DNA from: Phallusia mammillata
Taxonomy: Eukaryota
Direction of reading: 5' to 3'
NCBI GenBank assembly: GCA_965637545.1
Contig: OZ281499.1
Span: 26,040,001 to 26,104,000 of the forward strand
Length of the DNA stretch: 64,000 nt
The notes under the pieces: model-generated
Told to the model about the DNA's origin: nothing
Seen by the model: the letters and a program-made list of their open reading frames with translations, nothing else
Database searches by the model: none
Position numbers and translations under genes: made by a program
Shown here: positions 28,643 to 64,000 of the stretch, one piece after another
How the letters are laid out: every line of letters starts with the position of its first letter
Position numbering within the stretch: the first letter of the stretch is position 1

Positions 28643-31600
28643 AGAAAATCTTACAAGTCGTGGTAGAAACGTTTTCGCATCAAGTAAATTCAGCTTAGAT
28701 TGCGTAACAAAGTTATAAACGCGATTTCGCCAAAAAAAATTTGTCTGTTAATATAAGTGTTGTAAGTGTTTGATATAAGCTGTGTCTGTTAATAGAGAGG
28801 TGTTATGATACGTTTAAACCGATTCTGTACATTCCAAAACCGTTGGATTGTAAAAACGCTAAATATAACTTTTATAAACAATTGCCAGGTGTCATAAAAA
28901 CAACAAAGGAATTTGAAAACCTTTAAACAAACTTAAGTTGATACTCTGGTGGTTGCAACATTTGGAAAGAATGAAGTAATGTCTCTCTAGTAACAAAAAA
29001 TAAAGTTTTTTATTGGTCAAAAAATGCCTTCTAAATTTCACTTATTTAACAAAGATATAGTCAACCACACTACACTTCCTCTTTCGTTGCCCAAAATCAG
29101 TCAGGACACAAAAAAGTAAAAACGGCGGATTTAGTCTTGCGTGAAATACTGACACGAAACCCCTTTTTTGCGTCTCATGGCGGATACCAGTTCCACGTGT
29201 TGTTGATTAAATTCTAATGCCGACTCAACATTCACAGCAGAAGCAAAACTGACTACCGCTGAATTAACAACAACATCGAGCTCCACATTTACTGTTTAAA
29301 AGTGTTGCTGTTTCATACATTTTTTAATGCACATTAATCATATATGCTTGTCGCCGGTGAATATAGCAAGCAATAAATGATTGGTAGAAAAAGTCGAGTA
29401 TCGTCTGTAGCCAAAAGACTGCAGTGAATGATTGGTTAATTAAGATGAATGTGAACAGAAGCGCAATACCAGTCACGACAAAAACACGAGAAATACGCCG
29501 ATCCTCACCGCACACGACGAGTCAACACGTGGAAGCGTCAACCTTTGGAAAATTTCTAATGGAGCTGTGCGAGAGAAAAAGTTTTGGGGTAATCAGACTC
29601 CCTTGAAAGAGTCGGGACGCTACAATGTAGTGAATATAAGGAGGGGCCGCCACGTTTTTGTGCAGTTGAGTTGAGTTTACGGTGAAGTGGGAAGAGAAAG
29701 AAAATCGAGAGTAGTGCGCTTTGGTTTTCGGGCAAAAAGAGAAAGATTTGGCGCAAATCAGTGCCTAATTGTCCGGGACTGGTTGGAATTGTGATCAAAG
29801 GCCCTACACAACTTTGTTTTTTGTGTGCTCGCCTCAGAGCTATGAAAAAGCAATAATAAAAAAGTTTTACACACAATCAACCACAACTTTAGTTTTCAGA
29901 CGCGCAAAAATATTGTTACAACATGTTGTCGGAATGTGAAAAAACGATATTGTTTTAAAAATCATGATAGTAAACGCCATTTTAGTTATGACATAGTATG
30001 AAGGATTGTGGGGTACCGTTTCAAATTTGGGTTTGCAAGTGGCCGAATCAGTTTGGCAAACCGGATACATATCTAGCTTGTACTTAATTCGTTCAATGAG
30101 TTGTTCAAGTAGTCATCGTATATGTGTTAAAAATTTAGTGGTAAGATCATAACTTAATGCCAACAATTTATCCGATCGAACATGTTCGTACAGATATAGT
30201 TGGGATTTGTTTTAACCAATATTATCTTAAATTTAAACGATGGGTCAAGTACGTGCAGCCGCACTGTTGGCTGTTTTTCTTGTGTGTTGCGTTTTTTACA
30301 CCAATGCAGCGGTTACGATGTGCTTGGTTGGTACGGTTGGTAGTGATATCGCAACAGCTGCCTGTACAAACTTCTGCGGAAGAACTGAAATAGTGAGTGG
30401 GGGTAAGTAGCAATTTTGTTAAGAATATAATTTGTTTGTTTGTTTTTGTGATAAGCGACGCACAATGTTTAACAGGGTGTCAAAATTAAAATGGAAAAAC
30501 AAGGTAGAGAATGCAAAAACACACAGCGTCAGAACCGCTTACATTGCACATTGTACTACATTGTAACCGCTTACATTGTATTTGTACCTAGTTATTTACT
30601 TTTGTACATTTCAGAGCATGTTGGATCGTGTGAGGACGATCTCGCCGCTTGTGACGCTCTCTGTGCCGGGTCACTGTGAGTTGATGCAAATAAAATAAAC
30701 AGCATGTTTTACACACCAAAAAGTTTAACGTGGATAAAAAATTTGCACTAGTTTCAATTGACGCCGTTTAAGCATACTTAACGCAACCAAGCACTACAAT
30801 AAATGTTAGCGATAGAAAACAATACCAAGTTATTTTTTTAATATTATTAGTTCATTAATTACTTCAAGAACAACGTTCGTAAATGTGCATGCGACGCAAA
30901 ACAATTTACCTTTATTTTTAGGAACTGTATATCTGCTTGCTGCAATGATGCTAACGACTGCAACTCAGCCGTAGCTACAATGAGAGGGACAGTAAATTGC
31001 GGTGTTGGAACACACGATGGTACAAACTTTCAAACAGCTGAAAAGACATGCGACGCAGGCGATCTGTGTGGAAGGAAGGAAGTAACTGACTCTAGCAATA
31101 GTAAGTCGAGAAAATGAACTTTTATGCTTTTTGCACGCGGATAGACATTAAAATGTTACAGTGGTTTTAGACCACAAATATTTTGTACAACACGCTTCTG
31201 GAAAACTTCTACCAACATTCCTTATTACAGCTTTGACCTTTTGCCAGGGAATCTTGACGGTTAACTTGACTAAACACGTATAAACCATATTACAAAAGCA
31301 TAGTATTTTTGTACCGGTCATGAATATTTTTGTGTTTACTAACAACTTCAAAAATACCAAACTATTAAACAGAAAAAAACGCAAGAATTTAGAAATACAA
31401 ACAAAACTACAAAACTTTTCAGTCGTAACCATCACTGGATCTTGTTCAACTGTGGCTGAATGTGAAGCACTCTGCGATGGCGAAACGTAAGTTGTGTTAG
31501 TCCGAGACATTTCTGGCCCTTTTCGAACAAATGTTACAATTAAAATGTCCCCTGAGTTCCAGCAAAAGTGTAGAATTTAAAATAAATTTGCAGTATTTTT

Positions 31601-33039
31601 CAGCTCTAATGTAACAGTAAAAAACTCATCTGTATTTGCCCGTTTAAAATTAATAATTAAAATTCATGCCCTACCATTACACTTTAAGGGTACATTAAAC
31701 CGTGCACTAAAATTTAGTAACCGTGTAAAATTTGGTAACCAAATTGCTTTACAGCTTTAGGTCCAGTGTGTTGGTAAGGAAAACGAGGTTAGATCAAAAA
31801 ATGTGAAAACCCTGAAACCAAATAGCAATTGTGCATCGGTAGCAAACACAATAAACTGCAAATCGCCACAAATAATAGGCAAAGTGTTGTTGTTGCAGAG
31901 AGCCAGAGACGCATGTGTGTCGGCATGTTGCAATGGTGCTGACACTTGCAATACTTGGACAGTGGCACAAATGAGCAACATTGTAAGATGTGGAACTGGG
32001 GCGGACGCTACAACGCTATTGACTTGTGCGGCTGGATCGCTTTGTGGCAGAATGGAAGTAACTGGTTCAGGTAAGTACGATTTGCTTTGCTCAGTTTTAA
32101 AGTCGCAGGGTCCTGCTAAATAATAGTAGTCGAAAATATATTACAAAGACTAGTGCCTGTTAGCAAATGACTTGGATTCAAATTCGAAAAAAACAAAACA
32201 GTAAAGGGCATTTTACCAATAACATTCTATCCAATATGTCAACTGAAACACAGACCTTACTGCATGAAGTTTGACTTGTTGTGTCGTATTAAATGGCGAT
32301 AGGGATGACCGCAATAACTTTCTTAAATACATTTTTGCATGAAGTTTAAATGTTCGCTTTTTGAATGAAGGTCCAGCAACCACCGGAACATGTTTAACTC
32401 AAGTGGAATGCGACGCCCTCTGTGCCGATACTGCGTAAGTGCAATAAAGCAGTAAACAAGTTGTGCAAGAAGTGCATAACAAACACCAAATAATTTGTCA
32501 CAATGTTTTTGGGGAATTTAAGACCTTTACTGACAATTTATATTGTACATTATTTGTACAAACGGAAACTGCTTTCAGGTTTTTGTTCAAACAAACTAAT
32601 TTGGGCAGTAAACGGTAATTGAAGAAAAAACTCTTTTTACTGATAAAAAAATCGGAAAAAAAACAGGGAAATAAAGTTTATCACAAAAACATTGTGAAAC
32701 ATGGCAAAACGTCTATAAAAATACCTAAAACATGGCAGAAATCATTATAAAAATACCCAAATAAGGATTCAACTTCAATCTGATTAATTATTAGGCAATT
32801 TCAAAAAAACTACCAGAAACAACGTTTAATTTTTTTTCAAACAACAACATAAATGTGAAATCCTTTCAGTCATCATTACTACGAAAATGTGTTTGAAGCA
32901 AAACTCAAATTTCTTTCTTAAGCAAAGCCATTTCAGCTTTATACTTTTCACAGAGATTGCACAGCTGCATGTTGCAACAATGCCGATGACTGCAACAGCC
33001 GAATGGTAGCACAGATCGAAGCTGCCATTGTTTGTGGAA
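28643..33039 (+). repeat. Recent segmental duplication; the other copy is 59601-64000+
   Basis: Spacer and gene 5 exons 1-7 match the spacer and gene 8. Introns are ~99.7% identical by eye. Confidence 0.9.
29515..29670 (+). promoter_or_regulatory. Conserved cassette, core promoter of gene 5
   Basis: CACGTG 29526-31; TATAAG at 29635; GCAGTT with A at 29664. Confidence 0.65.
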
Positions 33040-36000
33040 CGGGAACAATGACAGGAGGATCGTTCCCTTCAGCCACTACTTGTGCCGCCAACGAGCTTTG
33101 CGCAAGAAAGGAAATAACGGGAGGTAAAAAACTGTTTCTTTTTTTTGGAAAAAACGTTATTTTTCAGGCTTTTTAACAACCCAAAGCTAGGAAGTTAGAT
33201 ATATGATCCAATTAGATTACTATCGCGTTCCCAACTATTACAAAAGAGACGAACAGTTCAAGTCGCAAAAAATAAATTGACACAGTAATTCGTACTTTGC
33301 AAAGAGCGTTATTGTTTTGCAAATTATTGTAATAACACAAGAAAGTCAAATTAATTTTCGTGCAGTAGACCAGTTGAAATTCGTTTCAAATGCTAATTCA
33401 ACTAATTTACAAAACTATATGTGTGCAGGTGACACAGTGGGTTCCTGCCAGACACAAGCTGCGTGTGATTTGCTATGTTCTGGAGTAGCGTAAGTTTTTG
33501 TCAAAACTGTGTTCTATTTTAGCTACTTTTTTAATGTAGCTAATGTTTAAATGTTGCCATAAAACAAGTTGTCGAATTGCTTCATCATTTCATTTCACTC
33601 GTGTTACAGAAACTGCGCATATGCGTGTTGCAACAATGCAGATTTTTGCAACACACAAGCAGCCGGGGATATCGACGCAGTCGTTCGGTGCGGGTCTGGA
33701 ACCGCGGACAGCAACGGAGCCTTCACTACAATTATGACTTGCAACACGGACGAACATTGTCGAAGGACTGAAACAACATCAACAGGTAATAGGAATAAAA
33801 CAGCCGTGTTGTGGCAAATGGAATAATTTCAATTATTTTTTTTACAAAGGCACGATTACTGGAAATTGTATTGATGACCCTACGGCGTGCGCTACTGGTT
33901 GCACAGCACCGTAAGTTTTTCAGTTATAAATCTTATATTCGTATATACCTGCCATCATTCAAAGTTTTTTATCAAGCCAATAGCTGTTTTTCAGGTTTTA
34001 TAATACAAGTATAATAGCTTCGATTGTAAAAAAATTTGAATGAAAAATTTGAAATTTGAAAATTTATCAAAAGTTCATTTTGTGCAAGCAAACCATTAAA
34101 TTTGTTTTCGTCACAGAGATTGCGTTTCTGCGTGTTGCAATGACGCAGACTTGTGCAATACTTTGACCATTGCTGTAACGACAGGCAGAGTTTGCATGGT
34201 TGGAACAACTACCACAGTTGGAACTAATGATCCAACTGGAAGTATGGTGGCCACACATTGCCATCCGAATACCTTCTGCGGGCGAACTGAAACCACCACA
34301 ACAGCAAGTAACAACTTGTGGCATTATTTATGGCTGCATACCTCGACACATACTTAATGTGAAGTAATATTACAGATAATGTGAATACTGTGGTGAGTGT
34401 TGGATCATGCCAGGCTGACGTCACTGCCTGTGATTTGCTCTGCACTGGTGTCACGTAAGTTGGACGTTAATATAAGTAAAGAGTAAAAACGTGAAACTCA
34501 AAACCTGTATATGAAAACAGTAAGAACCTCGTTTCTTTTCATTGTTTTACATTGTTATAACAACGGCATTCTGTATTTATTGCTTATTGTTTACATGTAA
34601 ACTTCGATGTAAAATAATACATGTTTCATTGCGTAACAGGGGTTGCGTGGCAGCATGTTGCAATAATGCCGACAACTGTAACAGCGAATCAGTCACTACA
34701 ATCAAGAATGTAGTGACCTGTGGAGTTGGAATTTTTGCTAGTGGAGCTTTTCCAACCCCAGCTATGGCATGCCCAGATACTAACCAATGTGGAAGAACTG
34801 AATTAACAAGTGGAGGTAAGGTTTGACATATTTCATTTGAACATCTTGGATTAACTACACATGGCACTTGCACATTTAAAACTCCCAAATTTAAAACTCC
34901 AAATCATACATAAATTTTTGCGTCAAAATAGGGTAGCGTAAGATACTTTTGTATTATCTTCATGGATTATTTCGTTGTGGAATAATATCTGCCGCCCAAT
35001 GGGAATAGTGAGGCGGAAGTAAAATAAAACCGCAGATCACTCACCTGATCATTAACAAATCAACACACTATTATCCGCATTGAGGGATATTACCCAACTT
35101 AATCGTGTTACACTTCTGTTTTTGGTGCCCGTTTAGTTTTTTTCACTCCGGCCTTTTAACTGATTGCGGGTGTACGGGCATTTACAGGGATTTTTGCCTT
35201 ATCCAGTCATAATTTTTAAATGCCCAAGTGTAAAGTAATTACCTAATTCGATCATTGTAATGTGTTATTTCATAAAGAGAACCTATAGCTTATACTGATC
35301 TATGATCAAACACGGTTTAAAAACTCTGATGTGAATCTTGTTTATTACAGCTGTTGAAGGATTTTGTTCAACGACAGCTCAATGCACAGCTGGACTTTGT
35401 GGAGAAACCTCGTAAGTTTCACATTTCTCTCAATGATTTATACCTAGCATAATGTGCAAAACGCGTCAATCTGCAAATCAAATAAAAACCAAATTTAATC
35501 CAAAACTTATTATTATCGCAACTGAGGTAAATGTTAACCAATAACCCATAATGTGTGTTGCAGAGGTTGTGTGGCGGCTTGTTGCAACGTGGCAGATGGA
35601 TGTAACAGTCTGTCAGTGGCAACACAAATGACAAGACAATGTTTGGTTGGAAGAACCACCCAAGTTGGAACTGCTGCAGCAACTGGAAGTCTGACTGCTA
35701 TGCATTGCCCGGCTGGCGAAATGTGTGGAAGAACACAAACCACAACTACAACTGGAGGTAGGTAGCTGTCACAGTTGCATTGCATCAACAGTTAAAACTA
35801 CAATCGGTTTTATTTTCGCGTGGAATAGGCGTGTACGCAAATCAGGAAACCTAAGCAAAACATTTTAATCTAAAGTCAGGCAGGTTATAAGAAATACAAC
35901 TCGGAAAAGTTTTTATCAAAGATTTCGTATTTTTGTCAACATACAACCTACTAAAACAAAGCAGTCGACATTAGCTTAATCGTAAATTGTAAAAACCTTA

Positions 36001-36435
36001 CTGAGTACAATTCACATGTTTAGGTGAGACCACAGTGGTAACAGATGGAACCTGCAGCACAGCAGCTGAATGCAACGATGGAAACATGCTTTGCAATGGG
36101 TGAGTTGATTAAACAAATCTACCTTTTGGTGATTGTCGAATAAAAATGTCGCATCCTTCAAAATCATAGCACAAAACAACTTTAAAAAAAGTTAATGCCC
36201 ATTGACTTAAAAAAATATGTTCTGCAGGGCTAAAGGTTGCATCGAATATTGCTGTGACACTGATGGTTGCAACTCTGCCGCTGTCACTACAACAACAACC
36301 ACAACAACTACAACCACTACAACAACTGCAGCAACAACCACAGCTGGTGCTGAACATGCAGCACAAATTAATATGTTGGTGATGATGGGTCTTGTGGTTC
36401 TCGGTTGGTTCATGGCTGTAGCGGTTGCGACATAA
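30240..36435 (+). CDS. Gene 5: signal peptide, 8 LU-like domains, Thr stalk, GPI-type tail extended by 5 LTR-derived residues (715 aa, 17 exons)
   Basis: Exons 30240-30402, 30615-30675, 30922-31100, 31423-31486, 31907-32070, 32371-32434, 32954-33123, 33429-33489, 33610-33785, 33850-33910, 34117-34307, 34376-34454, 34640-34815, 35351-35411, 35564-35757, 36024-36099, 36228-36435. Total 2148 nt, in frame if the CAG at 31904-06 is the acceptor. Ends GWFMAVAVAT*. Confidence 0.82.
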
Positions 36436-39218
36436 TTTGTGCAAACTTTGCAATATTTGTTTACCAAAATAGCTCGTTTTTGACTCGCTAGCTCAAAGGC
36501 TGCGAGGAAGTTAAAATGTATAGCAACCAAATCCCACTGTAATGACAAATCGTGTTCGGACTTTGTAATATTTCCTGTCGCAGTTAATTAGGATGCAGAT
36601 GCAACTTTGTGATCTGGTGTTTATGTGCTTTAACCGTATGTTTTGTCTCGTGCTGTGATTGGATGCTGCTTTGTGTGGGAATTTGTGCAAGAGCCAATCG
36701 CAAGAGCACATGTGTACGATTTAACGCCTTTATCCGGAGTATATATATAAACCGCACTCGTTCATTTCGATCTTTTCTCTTGCCTCTCTTTCTGTCCCTT
36801 GTGCCTTTCAGAAGTAATAAACAAACGAACCGAAGTGCAAGACACGTGTGTGGAGTTTCCAGGACTCCGGTCCTGACAAGCCCAGGAGCTTGGGAGGTTA
36901 AGGACGGTGGTATACCTTCTCTAATTTGTAGTGACGCGGTTGTAACCTTGAGACTCATCACCGAACATTTATAGTGACTCGGTTTTATAGCTTGTACCGC
37001 GACAAACCGTATTTAACACTACAAAAATTTGGTGCCGCTCGAGAGAGGAGAACTTACAAAACATTTGCTGTTTAACAAGTGGTAACTTCAGAAAAGCTCG
37101 AGTGATGGCAGCGAAGTTTACTACAAGAGACCGAAAGAATTTCCAGTTTGCCGTCCAAATGTTTGGACTGCATCGTTAAGCTAAGAAGTTGTAAACGTTT
37201 TATTTTTTTGCAGAAAACTGTATTTTATGTGTTGTCATCAACGTCGAACGTTTGTTTTTGTTTCTCACCGTTTGGATCATGTTTCTATATCATCGTTCGA
37301 TCAGTTACACCGCAGTGCGATGTCTTTTCTTAAACCAGGTGAGCAAATATTGAAGTGCTATTCTTGGCTGATTTGTTATTTGTATGCGTATTTGTTTAAC
37401 GAAAGAAAAACTTTTTACAACTCATGTTACATCATATGCGCACAAAGAATTGTATCGGTCTTCCACTGTGTTGACCTCATGCGCTCGATTTTAAGAAACA
37501 CGTAATTTAACCATAAAAACAACCAAATCGTGTGGGTGCTGTCCACTAGCCTAGCCATAGGAGTATATTGTTTATGCCACCGTGCTATTACATCGCATGT
37601 TGCGCCAATTAGGCGTTTATTGTTCTTCTTGTTCATGCATGATAAACCAACTAGGCGGTCTTTATTACTTGTCCGATTATTGTATTACTACGCCAAATAG
37701 GCGGTGATTACTTTATTATTATTGCATTATGACGCCAACTAGGCGCTCTCTGTTTTATTATCATTGCATGATACGCCAACTATAGGCGCTTTTCTATACA
37801 TTACAAAAGAACGAACAATCGAAGCTTGTCGCAGCTTCCGAGCATGGCTCGATACACGTACGTACTTTTTATTACTTTCCCACGAGGAATGAATACTATT
37901 ATACTTCATGCGAATGATTATTTACATCAATATACTCCTGAGTACCATCTACAATTTAAGGTTTAGTCTGAACATCGGCTAGCTTGGGGGCATACCTACA
38001 TTAAATCACAACTTGATTTCGTGTTCTGCTTTATCAAACGTATTCATTTATTGTACAATTTTTCTAGTTTAGTCAGCCAAGACTAACGCTTCAATTGCCA
38101 AGTTTATTGCCTGCCCAATTGTAACACATAATACTGAATTCGATTCTCAGGCAATAAATGCGCTGCTCTACCGTAATTACTATGTTCTATTGTTACACAT
38201 TAAAACTTATGTGTGAAATAAATGTCATTGTTATTTCGGTATACTGCTTGTTATTTTGTTGTTTCAGAAGCGACGTGACTTTCAACCGCTATTGTGATCA
38301 AGAGCAAAGGACATTCAAATTCACCATACTGACAGACACATAATTTCAGTGATTGAGGTGTCTGAAGACTGGAGACAATCAATCTCCAGGAACAAAACGT
38401 TACGCTCGAAATGCGATAATCAAATTCGATAATTAGTGTGGTGTAAAAGCGAATGTTGTTTGTTCTTGAATGTATAAGTTTAAACGTTTTAATGCCTAAT
38501 GCAGACAATACTGTATTTGTGATGTTACTTATGTATCGTTGTGTTGATACAGAAACTTCAAGAAATCAACAAATTTTCAATTGCATACTGTTTTCCGTTG
38601 TGTATGATATGTATTTTCTTGTGTGCCACTTTCATGCCCAATCCCGCAATGACCATATATTGCTCATTGCTCAAAAAAATGGCGGGGGGTATTTTGTAGC
38701 GGTTGCGACATAATTTGTGCAAACTTTGCAATATTTGTTTACCAAAATAGCTCGTTTTTGACTCGCTAGCTCAAAGGCTGCGAGGAAGTTAAAATGTATA
38801 GCAACCAAATCCCACTGTAATGACAAATCGTGTTCGGACTTTGTAATATTTCCTGTCGCAGTTAATTAGGATGCAGATGCAACTTTGTGATCTGGTGTTT
38901 ATGTGCTTTAACCGTATGTTTTGTCTCGTGCTGTGATTGGATGCTGCTTTGTGTGGGAATTTGTGCAAGAGCCAATCGCAAGAGCACATGTGTACGATTT
39001 AACGCCTTTATCCGGAGTATATATATAAACCGCACTCGTTCATTTCGATCTTTTCTCTTGCCTCTCTTTCTGTCCCTTGTGCCTTTCAGAAGTAATAAAC
39101 AAACGAACCGAAGTGCAAGACACGTGTGTGGAGTTTCCAGGACTCCGGTCCTGACAAGCCCAGGAGCTTGGGAGGTTAAGGACGGTGGTATACCTCTTTC
39201 TAATTTGTAGTGACTACA
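36417..39218 (+). mobile_element. Young non-autonomous LTR retroelement (2802 bp; LARD/TRIM-like; 4-bp TSD as in many Ty3/Gypsy elements)
   Basis: LTRs 36417-37023 and 38695-39218 with TGTAG...CTACA ends, apparently identical over ~500 bp. TSD TGGC at 36413-16 and 39219-22. PBS-like TGGTGCCG at 37030; purine-rich PPT at ~38673-38689. No gag/pol ORF in the 1671-bp interior. Confidence 0.9.
37600..37790. repeat. Five ~43-bp tandem units carrying CGCCAA-N-TAGGCG inside the LTR element
   Basis: Motif starts at ~37603, 37645 (variant), 37691, 37733 and 37774, separated by T-rich linkers. Confidence 0.75.
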
Positions 39219-41172: not shown

Positions 41173-44100
41173 ATGTATTTCGTGCAAGCAGTGGCCGTGC
41201 TCGCATTTTGTGCTGTTGCAAATGGTTTGGATTGTTCGATCGGAACAACCACCAAAGTTGGGGCTGACCCCGCAACTGGTTCATTCACAGTTGCTACATG
41301 TCCGACCAACTACCAATGCTCAAGAACTGAAACTACGACAACTGGTAGGTTTTCATGTTTTAAAGTTGGCATATAAAACGTGGTAGATTAGTGGCTCATA
41401 AACGCTCCACTATTGAAGGCAGTCAGTACCAAGTTAATGAAAAAATTAACAAATATAACATGATTGCTCAACTTAGCGACTGATTTTTCCACGTTCATCA
41501 TGATGGTGTGACCTGAGGTTACGTTTGTTTTACTCTGCGTAAAAATTTGAAAGCATTGTTGTACATTGTACATAAAAGTATAAGCAGCGCAAGTTAAATG
41601 TACATATTTTAGCCTCTTCAGTTGATACTGTTGTGACCGTCGGATCATGTTCTACAACGAGCGGATGCGACAATCTCTGCCTCGGGAATACGTAAGTTCG
41701 CAGCAAATAAAGACGCTTTTCGAGTTTGTATGTGTGTTTACAGACGTTTAAGGAAAATGACAAAAGGCGGACATAATGCGAATACAAATATAAAATTATT
41801 GTAATTTTGGTTACCTTTTTGGTAAGTTTAGTACTGTTACTACGCTACATATTTTTTAAACTAGTTGCCTTTTCTTTTCGTAAAATAACGGCGTTGTACG
41901 CTTGTAGAGATTGCGTTGGAGCATGCTGTAAAAACGCGGACGACTGCAACAATGCTGCGGTGACTGATATCATGGAAACTGTCAACTGTCTGGTGGGTAA
42001 CATTGCCACTGGCGCCGCCACAAGCATGGCGTGTGCAGCCAACCAGTGGTGCGGAAGAGCGGATGACACAGATGGAAGTAATAATTAGCTTCATTTTATT
42101 TTTAAGCCGATTTTGAGAGTCTTTTAAACTCGTTTTTATAAGATACAATGACGGGATCGTGCGAGACTACGAGTGCAGCCGCCTGTAATCTCTGTGGCGG
42201 TGCGGGGTAAGTCAAATACAAACATTTATACGAGGTTTATCCTTTTTTTAGGTTACAAGATTGCGCCATTAATGTTCCAAAAGTTTAATAAAGACTTTTA
42301 AAACAATTTAAAACAGGCGGTATATGGGACAATAGACGTGTTAAACATGTGCCTTAAGTTTACAACATCAGTCCGTTTTGTCTTTACCCCAAGCTTTTAT
42401 GAATAATTTTTGCTCTCTTTTTGACTTCTAATCTCGCATTGACGTTTTGCTTTTTCACAGCACTTGCACTTCGATATGCTGCAACAACGCAGATGACTGT
42501 AACAATCAAGCAGCAGCAAATGTAGGCTTCCTCTCCTGTATTGGAGCCAGTGGATCTGAGGTTTGCAGCACTGCTGGACATGTTTGTGCCAAGAAAGAAG
42601 TTACTCCAGCTGGAGGTGGGTGTCTGTATAGTTACTGTACTTTAGACCAATCAAAAACGTGCAAAGTTCATTCCATTCATGCCATATCAAAAGTAATATA
42701 TTACATTACCTACGAGATGAAAATGCTCTTATTTAATTTTCAGGAAGCACAACAACGACCGCATCGTGTCAAGCACCAACCGCTTGTGCAGCACTCTGCA
42801 GTGGTGAAGCCGCGTAAGTTGGCACTGGATGAAACCCACTTACATGAACTAAATTAATTAATCAATCGAACAGATGCATTTGGATCGCTAATCACTTTTT
42901 TTACGTTTAATTTAATTCTTTAAAACAATCCTAGAAACACTTGGTTTTAAAATTTAAAAGTCGATTTTTTTTTAAATAATCGTAATTGAAATACACGGGG
43001 TTCCCGTTGTGCAAATTTTTTTTTAAAATTTGTATCTGTAAAGACTGCCACCAATAGCTCGCAATAAATGCACAACGGGAACCCCGTGCATTTCAATTGC
43101 GATTATTAGGCTCAAGTAACGTATAGTTGTTTTGTTTATGTAGCAACACATGCGTATCAGCTTGTTGCTCAAACGCTGACGATTGCAATTCGGGAACCGT
43201 TGCCGAAATTACTGCAGCAAACGCGCTGAGAGTTTGTATGGTGGGAACCTTCACACAAGATGGATCCAACCCTGCTTCCGGACCGCTGACGTTTACAACT
43301 TGCACGGCTAACCAGATTTGTGGAAGAACCGAAACAACAGGTTAGAACAATCTTTAAAAGCGCAACATAAAAAAGCCGAACTAACTAAAAATGTCATCTT
43401 GTATGAAAGAAATTATCTTGCGAATTTTGAAATGACTAAATGTTTATGCTAACGCCTTTGTTTAGTTGCTTCCACTGGACAAAATAAATAGGCCATTTAA
43501 AAGAGAAATTTATACCAATGTAGCATTTTTTCTTTAGTATTTAAAAAAACTATCTAATAACGCAGAATCTTTTGCAGTGGGTACAGTGGTGACGACGGTT
43601 GGATCTTGTCAAGATTCTGTCACAACATGTGACCTACTTTGCATCGGGACATCGTAAGTTACTTGACATACAGTGTGGCTATTTAATTGTCAGCAGTTAC
43701 GGTAACCAGCAGCACTTTCGACTCTTGTGAAACATTTTTTTCCACGGCAGAACCAAAGAGCACACTAAAATGCCACAAACAGGGTTTTTGACTAAACACA
43801 AAAAATAGCTTCAATTTGAATTACGTAACCAATCCATTGTTAGCATTAACAGCCAGTGGTTAATGTGTAGTAAATCGCTTCAGTTCAAGTGAATACAACA
43901 GTTTTTTGGGAATTTTTAGGAACTGTGTGTCAGCTTGTTGCAACAATGAAGATAACTGCAACAGAGTCTCAGTCACTGATATGGGAGCTACTATAACTTG
44001 TGGGACTGGAACCTTGGCAAGCGGAGCATTTCCTACACCAGTTACTAACTGTGCAACTTTCTGTGGAAGACAAGAAACTGACAGTGGCGGTAAGAATATT

Positions 44101-47100
44101 TAATTGCTATAAAATCAAAATGACTTGTGGTTTTATGCAAATTTGCCTAAGTACACAACCGTTCCTAATTTTATGTTTCACATATACCCGGGTATGTAGT
44201 AAAGGCAAAGCACCACAGAATTTACATTATGTCTCACGCCCATTTCCATTGTGGCTCACATTAAAATCAATGGTGGAAAATAGTAAACATGTAAAACTCG
44301 CGCCAAATACATAAAATACATGTGTATATATAACATTTAAAAGCTCCACTTATTTACAGTTGTAGGATCTTGTTCAACACAAACGCAGTGTGACGCCCTT
44401 TGCAATAGTCAAACGTAAGTAAAAAAGTTATAACTTGTTGTGCTACTGTGAAGAAATAGAAATTAAACCGACAAAGGGGGGTGACTAAACTCAGATTGTA
44501 AATGTCTGATTCGGGTTATGTAACTTGAGATTCTAGGCGTATGTTTTGCGGAAACTTTGTTAATCGTCCGTGTAGTAAACAGTAATAATCAGTGATAAAA
44601 GCGGTGGTACTAAATATCGCATGTTACCGCATGGCAGTAAGTTGTAAAGGGCTTGAAAAAGCTTTTGCAAAAGTATAATTTTGCGGACTTTTGAAAGTTT
44701 TGACGGTTAGCGCTATTCGGGTTAAGTAAGGGTTTGTAATTCAAATAATGCTAGAATCTAGACTAATTTACCCTTTTGGGGGCTTGCATTCTCACATTAT
44801 CGACATCGTTCAGTATTCTCAGTGGAATACTATGCGGTGCAATGTGGTAATATGCGGTATTTAGCCCAACCCATTCTAAAAGACTTGCCGCAACCAAACA
44901 ATCATTTCCCGTGGTGTTTTAGGTTCCAAATTCTCCAGCTTAACAAAAGACGTTTATAGCACGTAGTGTACGTGAAATTTCGACTACATTTTTTGCGCCA
45001 CAAATTTAAACTGTTGTACAAGACACGAACAGAAGCAAATCAAAATACGTTACACTCTGTCCAAACCTTTCAACAACAAAAATGTTAATATTTGACCTTC
45101 CAATTGTATTTTTGCAGGAATTGTGCCTCTGCTTGCTGCGATAACGCAGACAACTGCAACCTCGTATCAGCCGCTGTGCAAAATGGTAAGGTATGTATGG
45201 TTGGAACAACTACCACCGTTGGAAATGGCAATCCAACTGGAAGTTTGGTGGCCACTCATTGCAATCCCAATATGTTCTGTGGAAGAACTGAAACAACCAC
45301 AACAGCAAGTAAAAAAAACATTTTGCGGTTTGATTTACGGAGTATTCGTCGGACTTTTTTTTTAACAAATCCACAATTTTGCAGACAACGAGGACACAGT
45401 GGTTGTTGTTGGATCATGTCAAGTCTCAGCAGACTCATGCGACTTGCTCTGTGCAGATGACTCGTAAGTTTACAAGCTCACACATTCTACAAAATCCAGC
45501 ACGACCAACATTACACATTTTCCAGAAACTGCGTCCGCGCATGCTGCAACAATGCGGACGGTTGCAACAGTGTTACGGTTGCTATGATGACAAGTACGCT
45601 GACTTGTTACGATGAATCAGTCACAGGAACAGCGACAGCTTTAACCACAACAGCGGACTGCACCACCGATCAAGTTTGTGCTAGAACAGAAACCGGAACT
45701 GGAAGTAAGTACTGTTGGTGTGGCTTGTTACGTCGTTCTGTATAACTTAGGTTTGGATTACATTGAAACTTATTGTAAATTGACATGGTAAAGGTAACTA
45801 GTTTTTATTCGGCAGTGAGAATCGCGCACTTTAAGCAATTGATCTGCAATTATTTGTTGTTGAATAAGTCAAATTGACAACAGAACTGACAAACGGCTTC
45901 TTCTGTGTACAAAAATACGCGATTTTACTGCTGAACAAAAACTGACACCAAAGCAAAGATTCTATTAACGCAATAATGTTCGAACAGATACAGCAGATGT
46001 TGTTACATCTTGTCAAGCTGCAACTGCATGTGCAACATTGTGTGGCTCAACTCCGTAAGTACTCAACTATGTCACAATTTCCATAACTGCCTGAAACTAG
46101 TAACAGTCTCTTAAAGCGCCGTGCACAATTACGTAATAGAAGCTTAAATCATAGTTTTAGTTTTTGAACCCATGGACTTTGGGTTTTCGGGAACTCCTAA
46201 TTGGGAACTAGTGACGCAAATTAATAATTGTCAGGAAACCAGTTTATTGTATTCAGCCTGTGAGATCAAAACAAAGGTTACAATAGACAAGGGGTAATTT
46301 CACTTGTGTGTGTTTTTTATTTGTCCATTTTCTTTGCAGAAATTGTGTGAGTGCTTGCTGCAGCAGTTCGGATCTCTGCAACATTTTAACAGTGAGTCAA
46401 CAAATGGCCCGAAACTGTTACGTTGGAAGTTCAACTTCAGACACACCAGTTATGGATATGACTTACACTCGGTGCGCTGCATCCGAACAGTGCGGAAGAA
46501 CTCAAACCTCTGTCACATCTGGAAGTAAGTCTTGTGCGACGTTGCCTAATGCTCGGCTCCCATTTGTACTTTTGTGCGTACCAACCCCAAAGTAAGGTAC
46601 TGATAAAAGATATTTATTCAATGTTCTGAATTGAAAAAAAGCACATTTACTTTTGTATAGACATCTTCTAAAGCTTTGCTAATGTTTAGGTACAACAACA
46701 GTGACTACAGTTGGATCTTGTACAGCAGCAACTGCGTGTGACACTCTTTGCGGAACGTAAGTTAGTAAAAAAAAACATACTGATAAAATGCTGTAACTGT
46801 CACAAATTTCAGGCAAACCTTTGCCCTCAACGTGTATACAAATGCGAATGTATTCATTCAAACATTGTCCCATCAAGGGTAATAATAACATCATTTCTTT
46901 TAACATGCATCTAACATGCTTTTAGAAAAGAAGCAAACGAACGAACAGCAAAACATGATTATGTTATTTCACAGGGCGGAAAACTGTGTATCAACTTGCT
47001 GTGACACTGACGGTTGCAACTCTGCCGCTATTCCCACTACAACAACCACTACTACAACCACTGCAGCAGCCACAACAACAACTGGTGGTGCTGAACATGC

Positions 47101-57763: not shown

Positions 57764-60479
57764 TCGATATGTTTCCAATGCATCAGCATTACTGTGTTTG
57801 TGTGATTTAGAGAATATATATTCAAGTTTAAACTATTTTCTTACGTTGCACATGGATTTCAACCTACTGTGAAGTGTGTTAATGTAAGTTGTGTCTCAGT
57901 GTTATGATATATTTAAACTGATTCTGTACATTCCAAAACTGTTTGCAATTTATATCGCCAAATAGAATTTTTTGTAGTGAAATTCCTGTGATTTATTGGG
58001 CAGACGAAGTGAAATCGTGTGCACAATAGTTCTACACTCGACGCTAATGAGTTTCAAAATAAAAAACCCGGAAAAGACGCGTCAACACAAAGGTAGCGCA
58101 GTAGAAAACGTTTTTCGATGTCTCGGATTACCCAGTTTTTTTACTAGCTGCAATCACTCAGTACCGATCCATTGGCAATGATGATTTAAGTCAATTCGTT
58201 TGTTTCGATTTCACGCAATTCACACTAACGTAATAATGTCACAATACGCGTTTCCAACCTTTGTTACGGTGTACTTTAAAATTACACAGTTTAAATTATG
58301 AACGAAATTAGTGAGTCCTGTGAAATTTAATGCGAACGCAACTTAAACCTAAAAACAGAAACAAGGGTGCTTTTCAAATTTAACAAAAGGCGACAATGAC
58401 AAGACACAATCTCTGTCATTACTACCAATAAACACAGAAAAGGCCCGAGTGTTATTACACAAACTTGCCCCACGAGTAAGAACGTTTAGAAAACAATTTT
58501 CGAGTTTATTAATAGTTTATTAAAAAAAGAGAGAGGTTTTTTAGTGCAACCAAACTTGGTTGAAAAGGACGGGACGCTAACGTTGAGTGAATATAAGGTT
58601 GGGATCGTATGGTTTTACATCAGTTGAGTTGGAGGGAAAAGATGATATTTTGTTTAAGTTTTTGAATTGCAACTTCAGTTTAGACTCTAGAGTTTCGCGG
58701 GAATTGGCTGAGATTTTTCGGCGGGTTTCATGAAATCGCTCGAGGCCAAGTCGCTTGTGGGCCTTGTCGCTTTAAACATTAGTAAATAAGAATTCGCTTT
58801 AAACATTGAAGTCAAATTGGCATTTTTTGCTAGGCCATGATTTCCAGCTATAGTTTGTTCAAACGCAGAATGTTGCGAAAACTTAACCTGCATATTAGGC
58901 GTCTAAGACAGCGGTGATCGAAGGGCCACGTTGCTTAATCTTTTAGCGTCTGGAGCCAGGTTCGGGTTATTTCCTGACATGCGACAACTTTGAATTGGTG
59001 AAAATGTACCATGTTTGGTCCTGGGGCTTTTGCAGCTTTTGCCTTATACATTTTTAAATGCAGGTAACTATCGAACAGAACGCGCGAGGTGATACGCGGT
59101 AAATTGGTCCAAAATTGTGGGGGGTTGGAAGGCAATGCAGTCGAAGGCCTCGTGTAGGCGTGTGTTTTTGAACAAACTTGAAAAAAGTCAGGCATAAACA
59201 TCACGTGGTAGGATACAAGTTGAGCGTTATAATAAAGTTTTGAAAACTTTCATAACGACTTCCATGCGGACCAGGAAATGGTTAAAGTAAAAATATTTTT
59301 GTGGCGCGACGCACTAAAGCAGGGTCACGCATAGTTTACAAACATCGCCTGTTTCTAGCTTGACCTGCGAGTCGAGCTTAATTGGACCGCCAAGAGATGG
59401 TCTTTCTATAATCTTATTTGTCTAATTAGTGCGCCTGTTAAATTGTGTATTCAGTCATATTTACCAAGAAATGCTCCTTTGCTTGGAAGTAACAAAAAAG
59501 CAATTGCTCGCGAACAATTAATATTTTTAGTCTTGTTTGTGATGTAACAAACTGCCTAACTGGATCCTTCCCTGCGTTGAAATCATATGAGACTAGGTAA
59601 AGAAAATCTTACAAGTCGTGGTAGAAACGTTTTCGCACAAAGTAAATTCAGCTTAGATTGCGTAACAAAGTTATAAACGCGATTTCGCCAAAAAAAATTT
59701 GTCTGTTAATATAAGTGTTGTAAGTGTTTGATATAAGCTGTGTCTGTTAATAGAGAGGTGTTATGATACGTTTAAACCGATTCTGTACATTCCAAAACCG
59801 TTGGATTGTAAAAACGCTAAATATAACTTTTATAAACAATTGCCAGGTGTCATAAAAACAACAAAGGAATTTGAAAACCTTTAAACAAACTTAAGTTGAT
59901 ACTCTGGTGGTTGCAACATTTGGAAAGAATGAAGTAATGTCTCTCTAGTAACAAAAAATAAAGTTTTTTATTGGTCAAAAAATGCCTTCTAAATTTCACT
60001 TATTTAACAAAGATATAGTCAACCACACTACACTTCCTCTTTCGTTGCCCAAAATCAGTCAGGACACAAAAAAGTAAAAACGGCGGATTTAGTCTTGCGT
60101 GAAATACTGACACGAAACCCCTTTTCTGCGTCTCATGGCGGATACCAGTTCCACGTGATGTTGATTAAATTCTAATGCCGACTCAACATTCACAGCAGAA
60201 GCAAAACTGACTACCGCTGAATTAACAACAACATCAGCAATCGAGCTCCACATTTACTGTTTAAAAGTGTTGCTGTTTTATACATTTTTTAATGCACATT
60301 AAATCATATATGCTTGTCGCCGGTGAATATAGCAAGCAATAAATGATTGGTAGAAAAAGTCGAGTATCGTCTGTAGCCAAAAGACTGCAGTGAATGATTG
60401 GTTAATTAAGATGAATGTGAACAGAAGCGCAATACCAGTCACGACAAAAACACGAGAAATACGCCGATCCTCACCGCAC

Positions 60480-60637
60480 ACGACGAGTCAACACGTGGAA
60501 GCGTCAACCTTTGGAAAATTTCTAATGGCGCTGTGCGAGAGAAAAAGTTTTGGGGTAATCAGACTCCCTTGAAAGAGTCGGGACGCTACAATGTAGTGAA
60601 TATAAGGAGGAGGCTGTCACGTTTTTGTGCAGTTGAG
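60480..60637 (+). promoter_or_regulatory. Conserved cassette, core promoter of gene 8
   Basis: CACGTG 60492-97; TATAAG at 60601; GCAGTT with A at 60631. Confidence 0.65.
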
Positions 60638-61206
60638 TTGAGTTTACGGCGAAGTGGGAAGAGAAAGAAAATCGAGAGTAGTGCGCTTTGGTTTTCGGGC
60701 AAAAAGAGAAAGATTTGGCGCAAATCAGTGCCTAATTGTCCGGGACTGGTTGGAATTGTGATCAAAGGCCCTACACAACTTTGTTTTTTGTGTGCTCGCC
60801 TCAGAGCTATGAAAACGCAATAATAAAAAGGTTTTACACACAATGAACCTCAACTTTAGTTTTCAGACGCGCAAAAACATTGTTACAACATGTTGTCGGA
60901 ATGTGAAAAAACGATATTGTTTGAAAAATCATGATAGTAAACGCCATTTTAGTTATGACATAGTATGAAGGATTGTGGGGTACCGTTTCAAATTTGGGTT
61001 TGCAAGTGGCCGAATCAGTTTGGCAAACCGGATACATATCTAGCTTGTACTTAATTCGTTCAATGAGTTGTTCAAGTAGTCATCGTATATGTGTTAAAAA
61101 TTTAGTGGTAAGATCATAATTTAATGCCAACAATTTATCCGATCGAACATGTTCGTACAGGTATAGTTGGGATTTGTTTCAACCAAAAATATCTCAAATT
61201 TAAACA

Positions 61207-64000
61207 ATGGGCCACGTACGTGCAGCCGCACTGTTGGCTGTTTTTCTTGTGTGTGGCGTTTTTTACACCAATGCAGCGGTTACGATGTGCTTGGTTGGTA
61301 CGGTTGGTAGTGATATCGCAACAGCTGCCTGTACAAACTTCTGCGGAAGAACTGAAATAGTGAGTGGGGGTAAGTAGCAATTTTGTTAAGAATATAATTT
61401 GTTTGTTTGTTTTTGTGATAAGCGACGCACAATGTTTAACAGGGTGTCAAAATTAAAATGGAAAAACAAGGTAGAGAATGCAAAAACACACAGCGTCAGA
61501 ACCGCTTACATTGCACATTGTACTACATTGTAACCGCTTACATTGTATTTGTACCTAGTTATTTACTTTTGTACATTTCAGAGCATGTTGGATCGTGTGA
61601 GGACGATCTCGCCGCTTGTGACGCTCTCTGTGCCGGGTCACTGTGAGTTGATGCAAATAAAATAAACAGCATGTTTTACACACCAAAAAGTTTAACGTGG
61701 ATAAAAAATTTGCACTAGTTTCAATTGACGCCGTTTAAGCATACTTAACGCAACCAAGCACTACAATAAATGTTAGCGATAGAAAACAATACCAAGTTAT
61801 TTTTTTAATATTATTAGTTCATTAATTACTTCAAGAACAACGTTCGTAAATGTGCATGCGACGCAAAACAATTTACCTTTATTTTTAGGAACTGTATATC
61901 TGCTTGCTGCAATGATGCTAATGACTGCAACTCAGCGGTAGACACAATGAGAGGGACAGTAAATTGCGGTGTTGGAACACACGATGGTACAAACTTTCAA
62001 ACAGCTGAAAAGACATGCGACGCAGGCGATCTGTGTGGAAGGAAGGAAGTAACTGACTCTAGCAATAGTAAGTCGAGAAAATGAACTTTTATGCTTTTTG
62101 CACGCGGATAGACATTAAAATGTTACAGTGGTTTTAGACCACAAATATTTTGTACAACACGCTTCTGGAAAACTTCTACCAACATTCCTTATTACAGCTT
62201 TGACCTTTTGCCAGGGAATCTTGACGGTTAACTTGACTAAACACGTATAAATCATATTACAAAAGCATATAGTATTTTTGTACCGGTCATGAATATTTTT
62301 GTGTTTACTAACAACTTCAAAAATACCAAACTATTAAACAGAAAAAAACGCAAGAATTTAGAAATACAAACAAAACTACAAAACTTTTCAGTCGTAACCA
62401 TCACTGGATCTTGTTCAACTGTGGCTGAATGTGAAGCACCCTGCGATGGCGAAACGTAAGTTGTGTTAGTCCGAGACATTTCTGGCCCTTTTCGAACAAA
62501 TGTTACAATTAAAATGTCCCCTGAGTTCCAGCAAAAGTGTAGAATTTAAAATAAATTTGCAGTATTTTTCAGCTCTAATGTAACAGTAAAAAACTCATCT
62601 GTATTTGCCCGTTTAAAATTAATAATTAAAATTCATGCCCTACCATTACACTTTAAGGGTACATTAAACCGTGCACTAAAATTTAGTAACCGTGTAAAAT
62701 TTGGTAACCAAATTGCTTTACAGCTTTAGGTCCAGTGTGTTGGTAAGGAAAACGAGGTTAGATCAAAAAATGTGAAAACCCTGAAACCAAATAGCAATTG
62801 TGCATCGGTAGCAAACACAATAAACTGCAAATCGCCACAAATAATAGGCAAAGTGTTGTTGTTGCAGAGACGCATGTGTGTCGGCATGTTGCAATGGTGC
62901 TGACACTTGCAATACTTGGACAGTGGCACAAATGAGCAACATTGTGCGATGTGGAACTGGAGCGGACGCTACAACGCTATTGACTTGTGCAGCTGGATCG
63001 CTTTGTGGCAGAATGGAAGTAACTGGTTCAAGTAAGTACGATTTGCTTTGCTCAGTTTTAAAGTCGCAGGGTCCTGCTAAATAATAGTAGTCGAAAATAT
63101 ATTACAAAGACTAGTGCCTGTTAGCAAATGACTTGGATTCAAATTCGAAAAAAACAAAACAGTAAAGGGCATTTTACTAATAACATTCTATCCAATATGT
63201 CAACTGAAACACAGACCTTACTGCATGAAGTTTGACTTGTTGTGTCGTATTAAATGGCGATAGGGATGACCGCAATAACTTTCTTAAATACATTTTTGCA
63301 TGAAGTTTAAATGTTCGCTTTTTGAATGAAGCTCCAGCAACAACCGGAACATGTTCAACTCAAGCACAATGCGATGCCCTCTGTGCCGATACTGCGTAAG
63401 TGCAATAAAGCAGTAAACAAGTTGTGCAAGAAGTGCATAACAAACACCAAATAATTTGTCACAATGTTTTTGGGGAATTTAAGACCTTTACTGACAATTT
63501 ATATTGTACATTATTTGTACAAACGGAAACTGCTTTCAGGTTTTTGTTCAAACAAACTAATTTGGGCAGTAAACGGTAATTGAAGAAAAAACTCTTTTTA
63601 CTGATAAAAAAATCGGAAAAAAAACAGGGAAATAAAGTTTATCACAAAAACATTGTGAAACATGGCAAAACGTCTATAAAAATACCTAAAACATAGCAGA
63701 AATCATTATAAAAATACCCAAATAAGGATTCAACTTCAATCTGATTAATTATTAGGCAATTTCAAAAAAACTACCAGAAACAACGTTTAATTTTTTTTCA
63801 AACAACAACATAAATGTGAAATCCTTTCAGTCATCAGTACTACGAAAATGTGTTTGAAGCAAAACTCAAATTTCTTTCTTAAGTAAAGCCATTTCAGCTT
63901 TATACTTTTCACAGAGATTGCACAGCTGCATGTTGCAACAATGCCGATGACTGCAACAGCCGAATGGTAGCACAGATCGAAGCTGCCATTGTTTGTGGAA
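61207..64000 (+). CDS. Gene 8 (3' end outside window): recent duplicate of gene 5, first 3 LU-like domains
   Basis: Exons 61207-61369, 61582-61642, 61889-62067, 62392-62455, 62868-63031, 63332-63395 and 63915-end are in frame. Begins MGHVRAAALLAVFLVCGVFYTNA. Confidence 0.85.

Follow-up and report, generated by a model that had tools for sequence, protein, structure and literature searches.

Two tandem genes in a 64,000-nucleotide (nt) window of the Phallusia mammillata genome (assembly GCA_965637545.1, contig OZ281499.1, positions 26,040,001 to 26,104,000) were found to be far more diverged in their first six exons than in introns 1 to 6. This pattern may be explained, with a probability of about one half, by gene conversion between the two copies combined with selection that retained copy-specific residues and the silent sites linked to them. 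The genes, gene 5 and gene 8, are referred to, together with their upstream flanks, as copies A and B (Table 1); positions are those of the window, the numbering being continued beyond its end. The contrast between exons and introns was real and not due to chance, and the exon excess was confined to six exons of this one gene pair. From the sequence we infer the exon model itself, homogenisation by conversion, and the persistence of diverged stretches through selection; the evidence comprises one assembly and the contigs of three studies.

Self-comparison of the window gave 98.5% identity between 28643-33039 and 59601-64000, and a global alignment of these segments contained 47 substitutions and 5 insertions or deletions (indels). 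The following 10 kb past the window were taken in to extend the alignment, which reaches position 34975 in A. The exon model was predicted from the reading frame, the GT/AG sites, the intron phases (1 and 2 in alternation) and sequence conserved across paralogs; no RNA run examined contained the gene. Immediately before exon 5, an 8-nt tandem duplication in A (31896-31903; single copy in B) creates a second, out-of-frame AG. On this model, exons 1 to 6 of A and B differ by 20 substitutions in 695 nt (3, 0, 4, 1, 5, and 7 by exon), against 5 substitutions (0, 0, 1, 0, 1, and 3 by intron) and two indels, of 2 nt and 8 nt, in the 2011 aligned nt of introns 1 to 6 (Fisher p=1.7e-8). Introns 1 and 2 are identical between the copies, seven exonic differences fall in the 64 nt of exon 6, and the four in exon 3 lie within 22 nt. 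These counts and clusters, reported from a hand count in an earlier note on this DNA, were all confirmed by the exact alignment. In a circular-shift test that preserves clustering, in which the whole difference pattern was moved around the exon map, at least 20 differences fell in exons 1 to 6 in only 0.04% of the shifts (p=0.0004).

By the Nei-Gojobori method, exons 1 to 6 contained 11 synonymous and 9 nonsynonymous differences. The corresponding proportions of differences per site were 6.6% (pS) and 1.7% (pN), with pN/pS at 0.26, so that no excess of replacements was present, and pS was 25 times the intron divergence of 0.25%. The view of the earlier note that positive selection alone is insufficient was thereby upheld. 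Beyond exon 6, the contrast disappeared: exons 7 to 13 carried 24 differences in 914 nt and introns 7 to 12 carried 25 in 923 nt (both about 2.6%). Exons 7 to 10 showed zero synonymous differences, and introns 7, 9, and 10 held ten substitutions and three indels.

The description of A and B as recent duplicates, also made in the earlier note, is doubtful, as their outer flanks are only 85 to 94% identical. Along the one collinear pair, identity runs through 88%, 94%, 98.6%, >99%, 94%, and 85%, and the upstream flank next to the genes is 1.4% diverged. In the old zone of exons 11 to 13, pS reaches 14.5% and pN 1.9%; intron 12 is 9% diverged and intron 13 barely aligns. Because the outer flanks, these exons and intron 12 are so strongly diverged, A and B are read as older tandem paralogs with a recently homogenised core and not as young duplicates.

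A third copy, C (81128-83016), shares sequence at 96% upstream of the gene, in exon 1, and over some of intron 1. Over the whole three-way alignment of 28643-30620, B equals C at 20 of the 25 A/B differences, and from 30370 on A and B agree against C, the site patterns switching between a grouping of A with B and a grouping of B with C. B matches C at most of the A/B differences in the block upstream of the genes (Table 1), and the differences at 30245 and 30248 in exon 1 thus mark the end of this block, whose history differs. The units carrying B and C are 91 to 99% alike across about 14 kb of flanks, including a near-identical 1.7-kb intergenic block (68297-70049 versus 90109-91858); in their gene bodies B and C are only about 82% alike, and B and A 99%. 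One gene body appears to have been swapped within the segmental duplication that carries B and C, and the locus as a whole reads as pieced together by exchanges between three or more copies. A 712-nt segment upstream of B (58889-59600), the last 320 nt of which are common to copy C, is absent from A exactly where high A/B identity begins (28642/28643).

Other gene pairs in or next to the window behaved differently. Four had exons clearly less diverged than introns and three showed no significant difference; the only other pair with an exon excess was that of genes 6 and 7 (43012-44129 versus 53414-54520), with 12.4% divergence in exons and 3.6% elsewhere. That pair contains one conversion tract of about 650 nt (43300-43950), with both ends inside long exons, near very diverged finger-coding parts. 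Conversion is clearly active in the array, but a faster rate in exons than in introns is not a rule of the family.

Within the homogenised core, the substitutions were over-dispersed (variance/mean 1.75, p=0.0002). When a substitution was counted as isolated if it had no neighbour within 40 nt, the 1154 nt of exon held 1 isolated substitution and the 2692 nt of intron held 7. Isolated substitutions are therefore not commoner in exons, and the exon excess stems wholly from clusters. The clusters form six islands of divergence (Table 1), of which three are fully exonic, one spans the 5' flank and start codon, and two are mostly intronic. Every island touches an exon, for which circular shifting gave p=0.015 and independent placement p=0.010. 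Each also has one or more amino-acid differences, and the two mostly intronic islands, 5 and 6, begin or end at a replacement site on an exon edge. Divergence across the island spans is about 7%, which equals the old flank level.

The exon 6 replacements fall in a five-residue loop between two cysteines, at positions that are variable in the family (1.7 to 2.6 bits of entropy over 74 family exons); A departs from the consensus of the family by two steps and B by one. In exon 3, B is the derived copy, as A agrees there with copies C and D to the extent given in Table 1, and three of the four B states occur nowhere else in the genome. In exons 5 and 6, B is closer to all three outgroup modules, and A carries five states that none of them share. 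The idea that the islands of B are relics of a C-like original was rejected, as in exon 3 it is A rather than B that equals C.

Table 1. Copies A and B, predicted exons of copy A, islands of A/B divergence and zones of differing history
Feature	Positions	Strand	Remarks
Copy A (gene 5 and upstream flank)	28643..34975	+	Aligns with copy B at 97.3% overall; blastn, MAFFT
Copy B (gene 8 and upstream flank)	59601..64000	+	Continues 1895 nt beyond window end
Exon 1	30240..30402	+	ATG, signal peptide, start of first module; GT donor in phase 1; 3 differences
Exon 2	30615..30675	+	Short module exon; 0 differences
Exon 3	30922..31100	+	Long module exon; 4 differences, all at 30955-30976
Exon 4	31423..31486	+	Short; 1 isolated difference at 31471 (Leu/Pro)
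Exon 5	31907..32070	+	Long; 5 differences at 31985-32070, four synonymous; last nt is part of a split codon
Exon 6	32371..32434	+	Short; 7 differences at 32371-32414; three amino-acid changes in Cys-x5-Cys loop
Exon 7	32954..33123	+	Long; 1 difference at 33114 (Ile/Val), opening an island that enters intron 7
Island 1	30213..30248	+	8 differences, in 5' flank and first 9 nt of coding sequence; B equals copy C; Gln/His
Island 2, exon 3	30955..30976	+	A equals copy C at 4/4 sites and copy D at three; Ala/Asp
Island 3, 3' part of exon 5	31985..32070	+	Gly/Thr split codon
Island 4, exon 6	32371..32414	+	Leu/Ser, Val/Ala, Glu/Gln; adjacent to island 3 in mRNA, intron 5 between
Island 5, end of exon 7 and 134 nt of intron 7	33114..33257	+	5 substitutions and 2-nt indel; Ile/Val
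Island 6, intron 9 and first codon of exon 10	33792..33852	+	3 substitutions and 1-nt indel; Thr/Ala
Near-identical A/B zone	30249..34094	+	33 substitutions in 3846 nt, 8 of them isolated; starts within exon 1, stops close to the intron 10/exon 11 junction
Upstream block with other history	29314..30248	+	In three-way alignment, B equals copy C at 18/21 A/B differences; A is the outlier

In the explanation favoured here, interlocus gene conversion would recently have made about 3.8 kb of A and B near-identical, from inside exon 1 to about exon 10, with six short stretches escaping or resisting homogenisation. Conversion tracts that erased a copy-specific residue would have been removed by selection. 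A retained residue, along with the silent sites close to it, would keep its old divergence, introns and unselected exons would be overwritten, and the isolated substitutions would be new mutations since the last homogenisation. As the selected sites are exonic, exons 1 to 6 would then look about ten times more diverged than the introns, synonymous sites included. Consistent with this expectation that replacements are retained and silent sites only partly so, pN in exons 1 to 6 (1.7%) is about equal to that of the old zone (1.9%), and pS (6.6%) is below the 14.5% observed there. Homogenisation of introns around retained exon alleles had been among the explanations offered in the earlier note and is the best-supported reading.

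Several observations weigh against it. Intron 5 was homogenised between the differing halves of a single codon, whereas four synonymous sites 40 to 85 nt away in exon 5 were not, and simple protection by distance from the selected target does not predict this pattern. Derived states are mostly one-sided within islands (A in exons 5 and 6, B in exon 3), a distribution easier to reconcile with a one-sided event than with old, symmetric divergence. Exons 7 to 10 are almost fully homogenised, so that selection must be residue-specific. When the whole near-identical zone is considered, the circular-shift p value rises to 0.026, and with six islands the link to exons is significant but not overwhelming.

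One alternative does without selection. Discontinuous repair of one or a few long conversion or heteroduplex events would have left random relics, the link to exons being due partly to chance and partly to where tract ends and mismatch-rich spots happened to fall. The presence of islands also in introns 7 and 9, the equal divergence of exons 7 to 13 and introns 7 to 12, and the agreement of island divergence with the old flank level are all in keeping with such neutral patchiness. Nevertheless, it is rather improbable, given that 6/6 islands touch an exon (p about 0.01), that the circular-shift test returned p values of 0.0004 for exons 1 to 6 and 0.026 for the whole zone, and that every island includes an amino-acid difference.

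The variant states themselves were compared with the rest of the family by searching both strands of 284 kb of the cluster for the longest stretch that exactly matches each A or B variant. Even the less well matched version of each variant matched paralogs over longer stretches than random single mutations did (mean 14.8 versus 11.8 nt, Mann-Whitney p=3e-4), and 5 of 15 independent units, counted by hand, reached a 16-nt exact match versus 5% expected. As the variants out-match random mutations in this way, many of the states are old family states and not fresh mutations. A patch of A at 30219-30261 matched one paralog (P-22k) exactly over 14 nt and again over 22 nt, in collinear blocks. A few states were unique in the genome, namely those of B at 30955 and 30975-76 and that of A at 32395; the A state at 32404-05 was unique among closer relatives and occurred also in one distant module.

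Such matches raise the alternative of import, in which a recent whole-gene duplication or homogenisation was followed by short ectopic conversion patches in exons, drawn from the family of >130 modules or from unsampled alleles. Patches would stay exonic as only exons are alignable with the donors. The collinear blocks, the several sites that, like the junction codon of exons 5 and 6, show both states among paralogs, the one-sidedness of derived states within islands, and the conversion tract of genes 6 and 7 with both ends in exons would all suit this alternative, which is possible although unlikely. No donor for any island was found in the assembly, whether by aligning each exon to its paralogs or by genome-wide searches with exon 3 of B, exon 5 of A, and exon 6 of both copies, which alone covered the cluster copies at 26.18-26.45 Mb. 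Genome-wide, the best match outside A and B was 93% for exon 3, lacking the states of B, and 86% for exon 5 (A query), and for exon 6 the best third-party match was 89 to 90% for B and 82% for A. The spliced exon 5+6 sequence likewise revealed no donor among the three nearest paralog modules, to which identity was no higher inside the island (80 to 86%) than outside (79 to 85%). Exact matches of island variants reached at most 30 nt, and the intronic parts of islands 5 and 6 had no paralog match in the 284 kb of cluster. Import would further need several tiny tracts from donors only 70 to 85% identical. The suggestion in the earlier note of exon-confined conversion from paralogs is thus the weaker one: many of the states do occur in the family, but no donor exceeded 86 to 93% and two islands enter introns.

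The junction of exons 5 and 6 bears on a further alternative. The two copies differ at the final nt of exon 5 (32070) and again at the opening nt of exon 6 (32371), which belong to one codon, GGT in A and ACT in B, whose halves are separated by the 300 nt of intron 5 with 1 difference. In mRNA coordinates, islands 3 and 4 make up one 130-nt tract with 12 differences. Both states of the codon are present among other paralogs. The junction codon fits selection on the codon, two exon-limited events, or a spliced template. The last of these, conversion templated by spliced complementary DNA (cDNA) of a paralog or allele across the junction with the intron left in place, would account for the differing split codon and the single mRNA tract, and the intron-less fused long and short exon in gene 3 and the retroelements in the window would be in line with it. 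It is nonetheless extremely improbable: neither a paralog nor a transcript with either island sequence was found (the RNA runs lacking the gene altogether), a tract crossing the junction would normally delete the intron, and the acceptor of exon 6 may instead lie 6 nt downstream (32377), in which case 32371 would be intronic.

Two contig joints, 30493>30620 and 31086>31425, appear to skip intron sequence. Their interpretation as processed copies was rejected, because the first coincides with a piece of intron 1 that is passed over when C is aligned to A, and the second spans the poorly matching intron 3 of C; the contigs bearing them are best explained as contigs of copy C. Of the cDNA donor put forward earlier, the split codon was accordingly the only hint. 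A germline exon-specific diversification system, in which spliced transcripts or family modules would template the coding parts of otherwise identical genes of a large surface-protein family, was kept as a candidate because the split codon differs around an unchanged intron and the states recur among paralogs; it is, however, very unlikely. The active diversification mechanism suggested by the earlier note was not borne out, as the pattern agrees with ordinary concerted evolution and does not extend beyond six exons of a single gene pair.

Whether both versions of the islands are real was checked on bubble-popped genomic contigs of three studies. In run X1, a single 785-nt contig carried the B states of both exon 6 and intron 6, with intron sequence on either side, and the exon 3 island of B was found on an X1 contig along with intron 2. 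The exon 6 version of A was found on contigs of X3 and X4, from the two other studies. Where two versions coexist, contigs should be interrupted, and breaks were indeed present at 31471 and 31985. Word depths in X1 were 41 for the A state versus 78 for the state shared by B and C at 29863-29911, fitting three equal-copy loci, and 33 (A) versus 41 (B) at 33131-33166, fitting two. The presence of both versions on genomic contigs of independent studies shows that they are not polishing artefacts, a concern raised with the original observation, and RNA polishing is excluded for the islands seen in genomic contigs. An assembly or polishing error caused by mis-mapped paralog or RNA reads is thus scarcely credible, even though near-identical tandem copies are error-prone and the G of A at 32070 was seen in none of the three DNA contig sets, a site that contigs cannot settle; the depth ratios also fit separate loci. 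At 33475 in exon 8, runs X1 and X4 show C for A, a state in neither assembly copy that may represent an allele or another copy.

The island states that are unique in the genome might suggest hypermutation targeted to exons, or positive selection acting on point mutations that arose after a recent duplication. The likelihood of either is close to negligible, as pN/pS is 0.26 with about half of the differences synonymous, many states pre-exist in paralogs, and the mutation spectrum is unremarkable: only 3 of the 20 exon differences are CpG transitions, and AT-to-GC and GC-to-AT changes number 9 and 8 (hand count). CpG decay and biased gene conversion were rejected as causes on the same counts.

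The window sits within a very large same-strand gene array of the 240-Mb assembly. Array genes consist of alternating long exons (about 160 to 190 nt) and short exons (about 61 to 64 nt) and encode cysteine-rich modules terminating in CC-x4-CN; with one long exon as query, 132 matches were obtained, nearly all at 25.91-26.43 Mb on the contig of the window. About ten cysteines per module, an N-terminal signal-like segment, and a hydrophobic tail are visible in the translation, and the products are probably secreted, glycosylphosphatidylinositol (GPI)-anchored, cysteine-rich repeat proteins. Pfam searches with single exons gave no match. The PF00021 (UPAR_LY6) domain, searched genome-wide, gave matches on other contigs and none in the cluster, a test weakened by the splitting of the domain over three exons. 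No match was obtained for a 74-aa fused-exon open reading frame (ORF) by HMMER against 1.84 billion representative proteins, and scores in the ESM Atlas search were below 0.8. Given these search results, the term Ly6/uPAR-like should be taken to describe a resemblance of cysteine pattern only.

In gene 3 (15297-15520), the intron that usually parts a long from a short module exon is missing, and an uninterrupted 74-aa frame across the two was confirmed by the ORF scan. Upstream of A, a dispersed repeat (29326-29773) has a dozen or more copies in the cluster at 84 to 92% identity and, in three sequencing runs, a roughly tenfold higher word depth than neighbouring sequence. Retroelements occur in the window, and a pair of long terminal repeats (LTRs; 36417-36935 and 38695-39214), 99.6% identical, is located at the very end of the coding sequence of A. 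The matching site is uninterrupted in B, and the LTR insertion is therefore specific to A and younger than the A/B pair.

The locus offers a clear case of invertebrate-style concerted evolution in which a few residues resist homogenisation. If the proposed selection is true, the islands would mark the residues that functionally separate two otherwise identical receptor-like proteins, and the Cys-x5-Cys loop of one module, the junction codon, and a linker residue would be natural targets for binding studies. A caution for genome scans also follows, in that a contrast between exon and intron rates of paralogs can reflect where conversion was tolerated rather than fast mutation or positive selection, and can change once the comparison passes the window edge.

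Accelerated exon evolution is familiar from snake three-finger toxin and PLA2 genes, where nonsynonymous changes are in excess in the mature peptide. Like those toxins, the genes studied here belong to a cysteine-rich secreted family in a tandem array and have exons more diverged than introns, but they differ in lacking any nonsynonymous excess (11 synonymous versus 9 nonsynonymous, pN/pS 0.26). In gene conversion of the chicken immunoglobulin type, diversification is templated from donor pseudogenes or paralogs. The clustered multinucleotide differences and the states partly found in family members resemble such a process, whereas no donor carries any island tract and nothing suggests a dedicated or somatic process.

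Closer parallels come from converting paralogs. In Tigriopus, GOT1p1 and GOT1p2 contain short diverged islands amid near-identity kept by conversion, and these were read as selected functional sites (PMC3728101); unlike A and B, these genes are intron-less, so that no exon/intron contrast is visible. Islands of divergence between converting paralogs are also described, and read in the same way, for duplicates of ATP1A1 in the frog Leptodactylus (bioRxiv 10.1101/2020.08.04.234435). Both cases compared orthologs or populations, as opposed to the one assembly and three studies' contigs used here.

The nearest counterpart, with agreement on nearly all points, is that of the primate L/M opsins. In gibbons, exons of these genes are more divergent than introns at both synonymous and nonsynonymous sites, the nonsynonymous rate (dN) is lower than the synonymous rate (dS), and conversion tracts are mostly intronic (PMC3213168). 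This was explained by homogenisation together with purifying selection against the conversion of distinct exons, by which neighbouring synonymous differences are protected as well (PMC3213168). A and B share with the opsins the arrangement as tandem paralogs, the mosaic of conversion tracts, introns less diverged than either pS or pN (in exons 1 to 6 only), and dN below dS. In the opsins, differences are kept with linked silent sites around functionally distinct residues; here they would be kept around the replacements that every island holds, those of exon 6 lying in the variable Cys-x5-Cys loop. Unlike in the opsins, the contrast here is limited to six of at least 13 exons, some islands reach introns, and the genes are part of an array of >130 modules, in which third-party donors are possible. 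Rather than by a dedicated diversification mechanism, for which no evidence was found, the pattern is best explained by a well-known process acting in a new gene family.

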